DNA of 64,000 nucleotides from Podarcis erhardii (lineage: Eukaryota), in the NCBI GenBank assembly GCA_964252035.1, contig OZ176207.1; one strand, given 5' to 3'. Every line of letters starts with the position of its first letter. Positions within the stretch are counted from its first letter, which is position 1. The position numbers and the translations under genes are program-made. The notes below the pieces were generated by a model, which did no database searches, was not told the origin of the DNA, and was given only the letters and a program-made list of their open reading frames with translations. Of the stretch, positions 1-60,464 are shown one piece after another.

Positions 1-287
1 TATCTTGTACTTGTTGAGTCACTATCTTTTCCTTTAGTTGTTTTAAAAAATGACATTCCCTCCAACAATTCCAGCAGCCTTGGAAGTTTACAAGCCCCAA
101 CACTTCCTCACATGGATTCTATTTTCTTCCTCTCTTCAGCTCAGTTCCGACAGTGATACATAAACCCCTGTAATCCATACTCCCTGAAGTTCTAAACCCT
201 CATTGATTCCACCCACAGCCTCATCTACAGCCTATTCATAAATCCTCTTCAATTCCAATGCAGAACTTTTGAATGCCACCAAAGTAC

Positions 288-398
288 CTTTTTGCTCCTG
301 AAAGACAGCGTCCGCCTCTCTGCAGCTGAAACTGTTCAATTGGCGTTGACTGCAGAGTGTTGCTAGGGGAAGGGTCCTTTAAAACTCTGCCTACTTGC
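288..398 (-). CDS. ANKHD1: Candidate alternative cassette exon of ANKHD1 (111 nt, QVGRVLKDPSPSNTLQSTPIEQFQLQRGGRCLSGAK)
   Basis: ACTAAT branch-like motif, pyrimidine tract, gacag|G acceptor and AAG|gtactt donor; open and phase 2->2, matching exon 27. Confidence 0.5.
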
Positions 399-1174
399 CT
401 GTCAAGGATAGAAAATACAATTTTCATTAGTTTTCTAGGCAAAAGATGAAAAGAGTTTCGTGTCATACATTTTCAAGCTCAGGTCCAGACAAGAAAACCT
501 TCTCTCTTTTCCCCTGTTTTATTTGTTACATATATATTATCGATCTCTGTGGAAACCCAAGGGATCTCCAAGCCAGATATTAGCAGGTCCCAGATCTACT
601 CAGCTCTACACATATGGAACTATTGTAGGCACTTCCAAAACATGTTCTAATTATACCCTAGATTAGTCAAGACTAAAATATCACAATTATTTAAAACACT
701 AGGAAATCTTAAGAAACTGGTGTGATAGGCATATGGAACCTGATATTGTACATAATTTAGATGGCAGTCCATTTAAGGCCCATTGAAATCAGTTGAGCAG
801 TTAATGGCTTATTGTCCTCCCCATTTCAACAGGATTAAGTACTTCATTAGAATCACTGTGCTCCACACAGCGCAGAATCTATAGCTCTGTTAGGATAGCA
901 AAATATCTCTTTTTAAAATAGTTTGACAGAAAGGGAAGGCTTTGGAAGCATACATATTTCTACAAGATTCACTATTGTTAATATGTTTACAAATGCATCA
1001 GCAGCCAAGAAAAAAGTTACATCAGAACTGTTACATATGGAAAAGTATATGGTTTCATATTAACGGCTCAGATTTAAAATGTCAAAGTTGTTTGCATCTA
1101 TTAAGTGTACTTTTTATAATGTAAATAGGCCTGTGCTCCTCGGTTGAAGGGTAGTACAGAAATTTAATTAATAA

Positions 1175-3433: not shown

Positions 3434-5316
3434 CTAAAAACAAAGATAAGTTTGATTACTGATTGCCTGCCACCAAATGATCAAAACCTCAATTCCAATT
3501 ACTGAATTCCATGTAAGTGAATGATACAAACTGTTATCAACAGGGTCCTCCAAGTGCTCAGACAGCACAATCCTATTTCCAGATGAGTTCAGGTGAGCAC
3601 AGAATATGGAACATTTGTTCCTAATACAGGAAGCTCTATCAACAGATCAGCGCTAATGACTATGTAGGCGGGGCACTTATTTTGATAAAAGATTAATAAC
3701 TTTTGAAAACACTTAATGGCAGCGTAAATTGTTTTGCGGCAACAGTTGCATTAATTATGTGCAAAGGGGATGGGGGACTGTTGAACAGCCTGCTTACCTG
3801 AATCTGGTGTTCTTATGAGTGATAATTATGCAGATATGCTTAAAGGTTATGAACCTGTGCACAGCATTGTTCAGAACTTTTTGAATTTAAAACTAACTTT
3901 GGGCACAAACGATCTGCCCAAGTGTTGTGTAAATGTACCACAACTTCCTGCTTGGCACTTAAGTATCAAAGTTCTTAAGTATCATAGTTATACAGCTACC
4001 TGCAACAAGGAAGACCAACTGTGTGGATGCACAGATAGCTATGTGGGAAACATCCATTTCAGGTAAGCAACCTCAGCTTTGTGTTTTTTTGTGGGGGCAC
4101 AAACATAGGAGATTGGTAAGCTAGTTATTGAGATACTGGATGCAGGTATCGTCATATGAACAAGGATAAGGATAGCTCACATCTGGTGTCCACCCAGCTT
4201 AAGTTGACAACTGGGGCCAGGTAGAACAATACATATGGAGCACCATGCAAAGGATGTGACTAGAATGTACTCAAAAACCACCTGGTACTTCGTATTGGGC
4301 CAGTTCATGTTACATGGTATGTGAAGAGACCCAATTAGAAAATTCTGAAGATGACACTTGGATGAAAGACAAAGAAGAAATTCTCCCTAATGATAAAATG
4401 GTGGCTGAAAAGAGAACTGAACAGAAAAATATGGAATTCACCCCATAGGCATAAGCACTATAGTCAAAGAGCAGATCTTTTATAACAGAAGTATCTAGGT
4501 TTAGTTCTAGAAGGTTTGAATGATGCAGAGGCAGAACCTGTGTGTGCCTGGGCAGACCAAAACTGGTATATATTGCAACTATAACTGAAATCCATGAAAA
4601 GGACCTTCTCCATAGCTGTACCAAAGCCCTGGTGCTCGCCTCTGAGACAAGTTTGTCATGCTCCTGCCACTTGAAACGATAGTGAATGCCAAAGATTTTT
4701 TAAAAAGAAGACGACTTGACTTTGGACTATAACATCTGGTTTTAGTAGCTGGCTGATTTTGAGCTACTTAGATATGTCAGTTGCAATTGTTTCATCTTCT
4801 GTTGTTGCTTTTAAATATTTGTTTTATCTTTTTATGCTATATAACAACAACAACAACAATTTATACCCCGCCCATCTGGCTGGGTTTCCCCAGCCCCTCT
4901 GCTTAGATCTTGTAAAAACTTGATGTTTTGTTATTTTAATAGTGATGTTCTTAGGTACCTTGTACTATTTATAAAAAATGTAAGGTATGAATCTTTTAAA
5001 TAATATGAAACTAGCTAATCATGAAGCGTAGGTCTGTAGCCAAAATGTAGTCACAGGATCTCTCTAAAACAAGCATGGGAAACTTTTAAAGGGTCTTAAA
5101 TAGGCCCACAAGGCTGTTTCCCTCTAACCACACCCACTTGCCCACACATGACATCAACTGTGGGGGCAGGCAAACCCACAACTGCAAAGGAATGACCAGG
5201 AGCATTAAAGGGAGCTCCCACGGTTCCTTATCAAGCAGTAAACTCCAGTGGGCCTTGCATTCGGTACTAAATTTTAAAAGGTTCCGAATGCAAGCCTTGC
5301 TTGCACAGGGACAATA

Positions 5317-6180: not shown

Positions 6181-6637
6181 CTGGTTTGCACTTTGGAAAC
6201 TGAGGTGTTAGTCTTGTCTTCCTGAGAAGGGAGCAGTACTGAGGCATATCGTCTCTCGCCTGAAGAGTGTGTGTCCATAGTGAAGTTTAGTTCCTGGCTT
6301 TTACCACCGCTGCTGCTCTCACTATTGCAATCTGTGCTGTCTAAGTTGTCAGAATCACTATTCCCACCAGCACTACCGCCTCTTGGCTCTCCGTTGATTT
6401 TATTTTTATCTGCTTTTTGCTGTGCTAGAGTTATATGCTGGTCTGGCAAAATTATCTGCACATTTTGAGGAGTGTCTTTTGTTTTATTCTTCTTATTCTT
6501 TCTATTTGTGCTGGGAGTTGTTACCACATTGGCCCTCTTCTTTCCAAATGCATTTGTGAAAGTAGTTGATGTTGCAGATATTCCAATAGTAGTTGTAGTG
6601 GTTGCACTTGGAGGCTCTAAAGGAACTTCTTGATCAA
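6181..6637 (-). CDS. ANKHD1: ANKHD1 exon ~26 (VDQEVPLEPPSATTTTTIG...SKVQTR), 457 nt
   Basis: ttttgtttcag|TT acceptor, AG|gtgagt donor. Confidence 0.95.
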
Positions 6638-7489
6638 CTGAAACAAAACAGATTTTTTAAAAATAAAACTTAATGATGGGAACAGTGGCCTCCCCCCCCC
6701 CCAAAAAAACCCCACCTGTATCAGAATGGTAGTGACTTGTACCATGACATCAAAGGCAGAGTTTTTCTGCAAGTTAGACCAGACTTTTAGCATTCTGGTT
6801 TTAAATCTATTTTTTAAATGCTTTAAATCACAACGGATGAATTAAAAAAGAACTTCTTTTAAAACCTGCTATTCTAGGAACTGTTTGTTGATTTTCTTCT
6901 GTATGTATCATATAGAACTATATAGCATCAATGTATAAGGTACTTTACAGGGTAGCAAGAACTCAGATGGTCGGAAATTGGACAATATTAACATGCAAAG
7001 CTTCATTTCAGAGGGATGAGATTCGAAGGTGATTTCAAAAGCTTTAGGGAAGAGGTGAGTTTGGCTGAGTTACTAACAAGGGAGTAAAAAAAGTGACAGT
7101 ACAACTTGAGTCCCATTTTTGCATTACCCCAGAGTTGCTGCAGAACTCCTTCCCACATGGTTAGGATAGAGATGAGATGAGCCATTCAGAAGGGGTTGTA
7201 ACCAGGACTTACTTTACCCAGTGCCATAGGAATAAGTGGTGCTGAAGTCAGTTCCAGTCATCAGAATTATAGTGGGGGGGGGGGGACCCGGGCCAGGTGG
7301 GAAGAAGAAACAGGAAGGGATACTTGAGAGACAGCAGGTGATTGTTGGATGGCCAAGGGTAATAGACACAGTGCCTACAGTATCCATTATGTAAGACACA
7401 CAGATCCTTTCCCAAAGCAGAGTTTAAATCTAAAGTTTGACTGGGTTGTGGCAGAAGAGGAAAGATAAAGATTATCCTTTGGGGCTGTC

Positions 7490-38836: not shown

Positions 38837-38860
38837 CAGTATTTGCTGGCACTGGGAGCT
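38837..38860 (-). CDS. ANKHD1: Candidate 24-nt microexon of ANKHD1 (ELPVPANT) between exons 14 and 15
   Basis: ttctctttttgccattgtag|AGCTCCCAGTGCCAGCAAATACTG|gttgga; phase 1->1, no stop. Confidence 0.5.
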
Positions 38861-54299: not shown

Positions 54300-54478
54300 C
54301 CCTAACCCTCCTCAGCCCTGCCCTCTTGCATGGCATTACATACAGTGAATTGTGGAGGGCATACTGTGCCTTTATGTTATAATTAAACACACAGTGTAAT
54401 GCTACAAGCAGCAGATTTCTTTAGAAGGGTATACAGGGATACTCAGGTTTTCCAATGCAATCCTTCAAAATGTCCTAC

Positions 54479-54712
54479 CTTTATAACAAGCAAGTGTAAG
54501 AGCACTTTCTTTGAATTCATTGGAATGAGTGTTTATTCCTGCACCATATTCCAGAAGTACTCTTGCAACCTCAACATGACCTGCACTGGCTGCTTCCATT
54601 AAGGGGGTATGTCCATTTTCATTATGATCTTCAATATTCGCACCTGCTTTCAACAACACTTTGACAATATCAACAAATCCCCCAGCGCAGGCATAAGTGA
54701 GTGCTGTGTTTC
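54479..54712 (-). CDS. ANKHD1: ANKHD1 exon ~6 (GNTALTYACAGG...ALTLACYKG), 234 nt
   Basis: ttag|GA acceptor, G|gtagga donor; ankyrin repeats. Confidence 0.96.
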
Positions 54713-54747
54713 CTAAGAGAACAGGGGAAAACAAACCAAGGTCACTT

Positions 54748-55043
54748 GGAGGAGGAGGAGGAGGAGGAGGAGGAGGAGGAGGAGGAGGAGGAGGAGGAGG
54801 AGGAGGAGGAGTTTGGATTTGATATCCCGCTTTATCACTACCCGAAGGAGTCTCAAAGTGGCTAACATTCTCCTTTCCCTTCCTCCCCCACAACAAATAC
54901 TCTGTGAGGTGAGTGAGGCTGAGAGACTTCAGAGAAGTGTGGCTGGCCCAAGGTCACCCAGCAGCTGCATGTGGAGGAGCGGGGAAGCGAACCCGGTTCC
55001 CCAGATTACGGGTCTACCGCTCTTAACCACTACACCACCCCTG
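54748..55043 (-). mobile_element. tRNA-derived SINE (Squam3-like) with (TCC)21 tail
   Basis: A box tggtgtagtggt, B-box-like gggttcgcttccc, body ending aaagcgggatatcaaatccaaac; (GGA)21 at 54748-54810 on +. Confidence 0.8.
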
Positions 55044-58256: not shown

Positions 58257-59092
58257 CTGGAAGATAACATTTTAAATACAATGAGCACACATGGAAGTAG
58301 CTCAAATGAATTACACAAATGGTAACTTATGATTAACTTTAGTACAATTTTCATTACTAAAGACAGCTGGCGTCCTTTACAAAATTATATTAAACAAACA
58401 TGAAGAATCATTTAGCAAGCTGCTTAGGCAACTCTTGTTGTGACTGTATCTGGGAAAATGGGAGTGAGCTTTAAGGACTCTTTCCATGCAACTCACAACA
58501 GGGAAAGAGATGCCTGAACCAGGAATCTGGGAGATTTATGAAGAATGCATTCAGGATAATTTAGAAAGGACTAAATTGCCACTCTGGGTGACAAAATTGA
58601 AGTATTTTACTGTAATCACCTTGAAAGGTTGTTTTGTTATATTTATATAAAAAATACCAAAAATTAAAAATACATAAAGCTTATATAAATATAAAAATAA
58701 GTATACCGTAAATTGACTGTACACCACTTGGTCTTTATATAGCCATGTGGCAGTTCATAGGACAGCACTGGTAAGTCACAATTTCAAAGGCAGCTATATA
58801 AATTTCTAATATAGGTAGAAGGATGACTAAGTCATAAGTGCACCAGATTATGTGTTTTTCTTTTTCAGAATCTTAAATCTTAAAATTGAATAAAGGGAAC
58901 AACAAAGCTTGCAGCATGGTTTTCTGAACATTTTGGCCAAACACTTTAAGAGATGCATATCCATACTGCTGGCTAAGCAGTAAATTTCACATAAAATATT
59001 GTCTATCAAGTTTCCAAGTCATTAAGTGAACACTGTATGAATTAAAAAACATGATGAGAGATTAATCTCTATGCTGACTTTAGCCCAGATTA

Positions 59093-59776
59093 CCGTATTT
59101 TTCGTCCAAAAATGAAGGGGAAATGCGTGTGCGTCCTATGGGGCGAATGCAGGCTTTCGCTGAAGCCTGGAGAGCGAGAGGGGTTGGTGCGCACCGACCC
59201 CTCTCGCTCTCCAGGCTTCAGGAGAGCCGCAGCGCCAGTCCCACAAGGTCGGGGGACAGCGGGGAGGCGGAACGCCGCCATCCCGCTGTCTCCCAATGTG
59301 GTTTGGAGGCTGATGGCGGGGAGACGCGTGCTTCTCCGGGCCGCCAGCCCCGCAAGCTCCAGGGACAGCTGGGAAGCGCAGCGCGTCCTCCCGCTGTCCC
59401 CAGACCTGATCTGCAGGCGGGCAGCGGGGAGAAGAGCGCTTCTCCCCGCTGCCTGCCCCCCAAGCTCCGGGGACAGTTGGGAGGCGCAGCGCATCCTCCC
59501 GCTGTCCCCGGACCTGACCTGCAGGCGGGCGGCGGGGAGAAGTGCACTTCTCCCCACTGCCTGCCCCGCAAGCTCCAGGGACAGTTGCGAGGCGCAGCGC
59601 GTCCTCCCGCTGTCCCCGGATCTGGTCTGCAGGCGGGCGGCGGGGAGAAGAGTGCCTCTCCCCGCTGCCGGCCCCACAAGCGCCTGGGGGGGAAATAATT
59701 TTTTTTTTCTTTATTTCCCCCCAAAAAACTTGGTGCATCCTATGGGCCGGTGCGTCCTATGGGGCGAAAAATACGG
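59093..59776. mobile_element. GC/CpG-rich Tc1/mariner (pogo-like) MITE with 108-bp tandem repeats
   Basis: TA|ccgtatttttcg...cgaaaaatacgg|TA; termini shared with 29275-29533; units start at 59353, 59461 and 59569. Confidence 0.85.
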
Positions 59777-60464
59777 TATTTATCTGTATTGTGAGAATTA
59801 AGGATATTTGCAGTCTACCTGCCACTTAAAAAAACAAAATCCAGCCACTGAAGGCCTAAAGTCGAATTCTTGCAAAATGCATGTTTCATCTGATGCAATG
59901 AATGTATCTAATGCAAGCAATTTCAGTATTAATGTTCGCACATTCAATTAGTCTTCCCTGTACAGTTTTACCAAGGACAACTATTTGACATTTAATATTC
60001 TATGAAGTAATTCCTGGCCTTCCTTCCTTACTTTCCTATGAGTATATAAGCCTCATCCTCTGTGCTCCATATTGCCTCATTATACAACTATCCCATTTTT
60101 AAATTTGCATGAAACTGCATGGATGCAACATATATGTGAATATACTTCATCAATTAACATGTGGAAATATGTCAATTTTGTCTCATGACATTACCTTATC
60201 TTGCTACTGAAGCTCTCCAAGCCAATTAGAGAACCTCGCCTCTGAATCACATTGAGGGATTGATATGGCTGAAATATTACTTTGGGTAAAGCCCAAAGTG
60301 GTCACTATTCAGTTTACATTTCTGAATACCAGAGACAGAAGCTGGTCTAGGCCTATTTATATTCCTTTATTAGATATACCAAGAGCCACTTTATCCACAA
60401 TCCTCAGCTTTTCAAGTCAAATGCAGATAGAATCAAACCAGATGAACAGGAATTCAATACATAC

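Follow-up and report, generated by a model that had tools for sequence, protein, structure and literature searches.

The locus analysed here raises the question of whether a 111-nt open interval on the minus strand, lying in the intron before the KH-domain exon of a lizard ANKHD1 gene, is a genuine coding exon and, if so, whether it is included in every transcript or only in some. By tblastn, the minus strand of the window (the whole 64-kb stretch of DNA that was analysed, which contains no N) carries 24 colinear exons matching P0133, an ANKHD1-like protein of a caecilian, and these run from ~63.8 kb down to 3.3 kb. All best database matches to the gene are named ANKHD1, and the order of two ankyrin blocks followed by a KH domain on colinear exons is that of ANKHD1; the KH exon itself lies outside the window, below position 1, and is present in a related contig (L005, below). 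The assignment to ANKHD1, which has the paralogue ANKRD17, is based on the colinear exons and the names of the matches. The ANKHD1 protein, a large scaffold whose fly counterpart is Mask, acts in Hippo/YAP, JAK/STAT, and receptor-kinase signalling, and its single KH domain is the sole part known to bind nucleic acid. Elsewhere in the gene, an intronic run of ~25 proline codons (a CCN repeat; 54700-54800, minus strand) lies just upstream of an ankyrin-repeat exon and is read through in an ORF at 54465-54896.

The interval and its signals within the window

The constitutive exon upstream of the interval is exon 27 (3433-3287, minus strand; placed by tblastn with P0133), which ends in GWKEVVR plus the AG that opens an Arg codon, at a consensus donor (AAG|gtaagt; score 8.5 on a crude matrix). 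The candidate exon follows at 398-288 on the minus strand, from G at 398 to AAAAAG at 288. Its acceptor region (432-399, minus strand) comprises ACTAAT at 431-426, the element AATGAAAA at 428-421, a pyrimidine tract at ~420-402, and an AG at 400-399 (the sequence ccttgacag ends at 399), while a weak donor, AAG|gtactt, occupies 287-282. The first-pass annotation had described just this minus-strand layout of ACTAAT, acceptor, 111 open nucleotides, and donor, and the description is correct, as can be seen directly in the sequence. The interval is open in the phase left by exon 27, with stops in all other five frames; as it is 111 nt long and free of stops in that phase, its inclusion would retain the reading frame and add 37 residues (translation from window 286-400, minus strand). 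Decayed retroelement ORFs with reverse-transcriptase-like and LINE-tail-like translations lie on both strands (1400-2742) of the intron that separates exon 27 from the candidate.

Splice sites were scored with a crude position-weight matrix of approximate frequencies, so that the scores have relative value only. On this scale, the candidate acceptor (5.4 in both lizard and L005) beats 14 of the 22 real ANKHD1 acceptors and falls in their top third, whereas the candidate donor (1.1 in the window, 0.0 in L005) has a score as low as that of only three of the 24 real donors. A control scan of the 64 kb was made for intervals of 60-200 nt with a length divisible by three, an open frame in the same offset, and splice scores at least equal to those of the candidate; it returned six comparable intervals on the minus strand and two on the plus strand. 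Codon usage is mildly exon-like, with a log-likelihood of 2.7 for the candidate, a value that only 6% of 8100 open windows from introns attain, against a mean of 5.4 for real exons. With two to six comparable intervals per 64-kb strand and a weak donor, the candidate's signals within the window alone do not exceed chance. Two features touched by the scan are recorded here in their own right. One of the chance intervals (59626-59519) arises from a region at 59090-59830 in which long ORFs occur in several frames on both strands with a repeated peptide theme, indicating that an early intron of ANKHD1 contains a GC-rich tandem repeat. In addition, the strong acceptor at 38860 (minus strand) of a 24-nt microexon candidate was paired in the scan with two weak donors, which lie 117 and 159 nt downstream of it.

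Nearly all of the annotated fish and caecilian proteins examined pass directly from exon 27 to the KH domain. A word search with the salmonid protein P0010 yielded a set of full-length ANKHD1 proteins, from fish and one caecilian, of which the best 120 were listed; among these, 117 of the 118 that bear the motif have the direct junction EVVRR|SKKL(S/L)VP. When the exon-27 peptide was searched against 1.84 billion representatives, the matches were mostly small ORFs that continue past the exon boundary into the intron; two long fish proteins with the same EVVRR|SKKL(S/L)VP junction were also among them. The candidate peptide follows EVVRR in no protein among the matches listed, where the full-length models seen were those of fish and a caecilian. 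The junction that the first-pass annotation had given for human ANKHD1 is thus confirmed for these homologues.

An orthologous locus and probable optional use of the exon

To find a counterpart of the interval, JGI metagenome contigs were searched with a degenerate DNA pattern that encodes nine of the residues that do not vary, and six loci were returned. Four of these (L001, L002, L004, and L006) are GC-rich chance matches. The whole block is carried by the other two, L003 (Ga0181612_109157) and L005 (Ga0065711_1006296), which overlap over 846 nt at 99.9% identity and hence come from one species. Exons appear in them in the order of the lizard gene: exon 26 (L003 596-1057), exon 27 (L003 3746-3891), the block (L003 5362-5472, equal to L005 412-522), the KH exon (L005 2053-2209), and the exon after it (L005 2508-2717), with the block ~1.5 kb from either neighbour. 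Its position in the same intron, with exon 27 on one side and the KH exon on the other, makes the block orthologous to the lizard interval. The intron between exon 27 and the block measures 2.9 kb in the window against 1.5 kb in the relative, because retroelement ORFs of the kind noted above are absent from the relative's intron.

Both contigs (5.8 kb and 24 kb) come from JGI metagenomes of different projects, and their sequence is vertebrate, CpG-depleted, and of GC 0.40-0.44; they are host or contaminant DNA within metagenome assemblies. No Alu-like signature was found across 7.7 kb of L003/L005, and their exon-27 ORF is unlike every ORF cluster in the collection, two observations that disfavour a human origin; JGI filters out human reads. 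At the amino acid level, exon 26 of the lizard is 88% identical to that of L003 versus 79% to that of the caecilian, while exon 27 of L003 (79%) is no closer than that of the caecilian. The 20 intron codons just upstream of exon 27 (beginning MLSFYSVICN) are conserved among a group of Logan ORFs (P0001 and P0153-P0157) and L003 (3683-3745) and unlike the corresponding lizard sequence (3434-3500), which suggests that the ORFs and L003 come from a clade other than squamates, one that evolves slowly.

Local blastn of window 7000-1 (minus strand, with 1157-1192 masked) against the 7.7-kb relative gave only three HSPs, all colinear: exon 26 (window 6181-6648, minus strand, located by tblastn and by this comparison, and used as a divergence calibrator) at 84.6% nucleotide identity, exon 27 at 78.9%, and window 432-283 at 84.0% over 150 nt. 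The introns are otherwise unalignable between the window and L003/L005. The third segment thus comprises the candidate exon together with its splice signals, and identity falls sharply beyond about -35 and +5 around the exon in the window-L005 alignment. L005 matches the window exactly at AATGAAAA and over the final 10 bases of the intron (ccttgacag plus context), and the donor there, AAG|gtactg, is conserved through +5, beyond which the alignment is lost. The first-pass annotation had entertained a lineage-specific exon, a suggestion contradicted by the retention of the exon in a vertebrate remote enough for the introns around it to have become unalignable. The depth of conservation is gauged here only by these unalignable introns and by dS values of 0.7-1.4.

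The donor lacks the +4A/+5G consensus in both lizard and L005, so its recognition should depend on regulators, and such conserved weakness is typical of regulated exons. No motif for RBFOX, PTB, NOVA, MBNL, CELF, or QKI is conserved in position between the window and the relative. A QKI-like site had been proposed at the ACTAAT, but this reading is not supported, as the ACUAAY core is not conserved (ACCAAT in L005), there is no second half-site, and the window has a single ACTAAT, at -33; the element is best read as a putative branch site.

From the annotated homologues that skip from EVVRR to SKKL, a length that is a multiple of three, and a weak donor, we infer that the candidate is probably an optional exon. 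It could instead be constitutive, always included in the lizard and in other sauropsid-like lineages, and the annotated proteins examined leave some room for this, given that those without the exon are from fish or a caecilian, animals whose genes may lack it altogether. Such constant use is nonetheless unlikely when set against a weak donor conserved in both species, a length and phase typical of optional exons, and the amniote ANKHD1 reference proteins, human included, which probably join EVVRR to SKKL. Under the favoured reading of optional use, the main isoform would skip the exon and some tissue or stage would include it.

Substitution pattern and origin of the block

The candidate exon and L005 412-522 align without indels and share 95 of 111 nucleotides. 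The 16 differences fall within 108 nt (36 full codons) and are distributed over codon positions 1, 2, and 3 as 3/1/12, an excess at third positions that was assessed by binomial test (p = 2.9e-5 versus neutral site shares, p = 8e-4 versus equal positions). The corresponding counts (Sd = 12, Nd = 4) give dS = 0.70, dN = 0.051, and omega = 0.07 for this one species pair and 36 codons. In exon 27 compared with L003, the differences are 10/2/20 by codon position, with dS = 1.45, dN = 0.097, and omega = 0.067. A dN/dS comparison had been put forward by the first-pass annotation as a check on the exon, and its outcome, a ratio of 0.07 against L005 that equals that of exon 27, is the pattern of a translated exon. 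The peptide is identical to L005 at 33 of 36 residues, while the amino acid identities of exons 26 and 27 are 88% and 79%, respectively.

A third lineage extends this comparison. Among 5.8 billion clusters, the 76-aa ORF around the candidate has one relative, P0148, a 69-aa ORF from a 7217-nt Logan contig. The two are identical at 39 of 44 residues in a gap-free stretch that begins 8 bases ahead of the acceptor and ends 12 bases past the donor, and their flanks are unalike. P0148 keeps the frame. Across the three lineages, 31 of 38 residues do not vary (including QVGRVLKDP, T-P, QLQRGGRC with its RGGR, and SGAK), no indels occur, and three of the four replaced codons are conservative swaps. 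An apparent downstream homology of P0148 (the WVE match) was dropped, having scored no better than shuffled sequence (291 of 500 shuffles).

These data bear on whether the block might be a conserved non-coding element, that is, a regulator of splicing or transcription or a structured RNA in which the open frame is incidental. Conserved intronic islands do exist, and the dS of the block (0.70) below that of exon 27 (1.45) points to some added constraint at the nucleotide level, which is also compatible with overlapping splicing signals in an exon. Yet 12 of the 16 differences fall at the third position of the host frame, replacements are mostly conservative and three lineages indel-free, and the AG and GT stand exactly at the borders of the island, so that a non-coding element is very improbable. 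Read from the alignments, the substitution pattern is that of a translated exon, not of a conserved non-coding element or a chance ORF.

A chance pseudo-exon, an open intronic stretch between an AG and a GT that is never spliced and has no function, draws on the comparable intervals of the control scan and on the weak donor. We regard it as highly improbable now that the block has emerged as one of only three segments still aligning with a distant vertebrate, in an island whose borders match the predicted splice sites and with its differences concentrated at third codon positions. The cross-species data, as aligned here, raise the candidate above chance. Least credible of all is a mobile or duplicated fragment common to unrelated loci, which would account for the similarity of P0148 stopping at the block edges and for the absence of an exon-27 ORF from any 7217-nt contig in the word search with exon 27, but which is at odds with the position of the block in the same ANKHD1 intron in L003/L005, with the lack of a second copy in the window, of a Pfam family matching the candidate, and with a single small-ORF relative among the 5.8 billion clusters. 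A repeat or transposon origin of the block was likewise rejected, as no second window copy, no Pfam family, and no transposon common to the window and the relative were found.

The reading as a real protein-coding exon of ANKHD1 is, by contrast with these rivals, very likely. Usable acceptor and donor sites flank a block whose length is a multiple of three and which is free of host-frame stops (also in L005 and P0148), and the block lies at an orthologous position with purifying selection on its peptide. Orthologous conservation and coding-type substitutions thereby support the proposal of the first-pass annotation that an in-frame 111-nt ANKHD1 exon adding 37 residues precedes the KH exon. 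Taken as a whole, the description of a genuine coding exon under purifying selection, most likely optional and inserted before the KH domain, is one that we hold with good confidence on comparative grounds.

Predicted effect on the KH domain and comparison with known systems

If this description is right, the exon would have been kept by purifying selection since before the split between the lizard and the distant vertebrate, and, once spliced to the EVVRR exon on one side and the KH exon on the other, it would add 37 residues directly N-terminal to the first KH strand. The predicted insert would be mostly hydrophilic and basic (7 K/R versus 2 D/E). An RGG/RG box is reported to contain at least two RGG/RG repeats close to one another (di- or tri-RGG); the insert has a single RGG, present as RGGR and invariant in the three lineages, and is better described as carrying an RGG-like motif. 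Such a basic, RGG-bearing arm may alter the binding of nucleic acid or of partners by the KH domain, and it could, more speculatively, raise nucleic-acid binding or offer a proline-directed phosphosite. A stronger version, in which an ancient (amniote-wide or older) tissue-regulated module described in no paper uses its basic RGG/TP arm to switch the RNA or partner binding of the ANKHD1 KH domain between two states, is tentative and rather doubtful. Were it true, a scaffold linked to Hippo/YAP and miRNA would toggle its binding of RNA or partners.

Optional segments at KH domains have precedents. In NOVA1, exon 4 encodes an optional 24-aa spacer that separates KH1 from KH2, and in FMR1, exon 12 provides an optional 21-aa extension within KH2. 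Like these, the ANKHD1 candidate is short, frame-preserving, conserved, and located beside or within a KH domain whose fold it would leave intact, although its optional use is predicted. Unlike them, it would place its residues on the N-terminal side of the one KH domain in a giant scaffold built of ankyrin repeats, and it is predicted from sequence.

Within ANKHD1, the isoforms described in the accessible parts of two papers are the full-length protein, the VBARP-L/S truncations, and the ANKHD1-EIF4EBP3 read-through (PMC10454556; PMC6721216). They resemble the candidate in arising by alternative processing of the same gene and differ from it in being truncated before the KH domain or fused to 4E-BP3, none of those described there inserting at the KH boundary. 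The accessible parts of the ANKHD1 splicing literature deal with other exons or with ANKHD1 as a regulator and describe no insert at that boundary, and neither the candidate peptide strings nor the metagenome identifiers were found in the searchable literature. With no paper found on the exon, the earlier characterization of the isoform as little-described fits. Should automatic lizard or bird gene models already hold the exon, the present result would amount to sound annotation and not discovery.

With a selected insert of 37 residues at the KH edge, the RNA-binding end of ANKHD1 would have a second form that is regulated, and the KH domain with versus without the insert offers a concrete handle on it. 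The locus moreover illustrates that exon calls made on sequence only can be validated through stray host contigs in metagenomes.

One annotated protein also has an insert at this junction. The salmon protein P0082 (Oncorhynchus tshawytscha, UniRef) carries 28 residues there, but their sequence is unrelated to the candidate and begins WV..., like the intron read-through ORFs of other species, so the insert is probably the product of a downstream alternative donor or a gene-model artefact.
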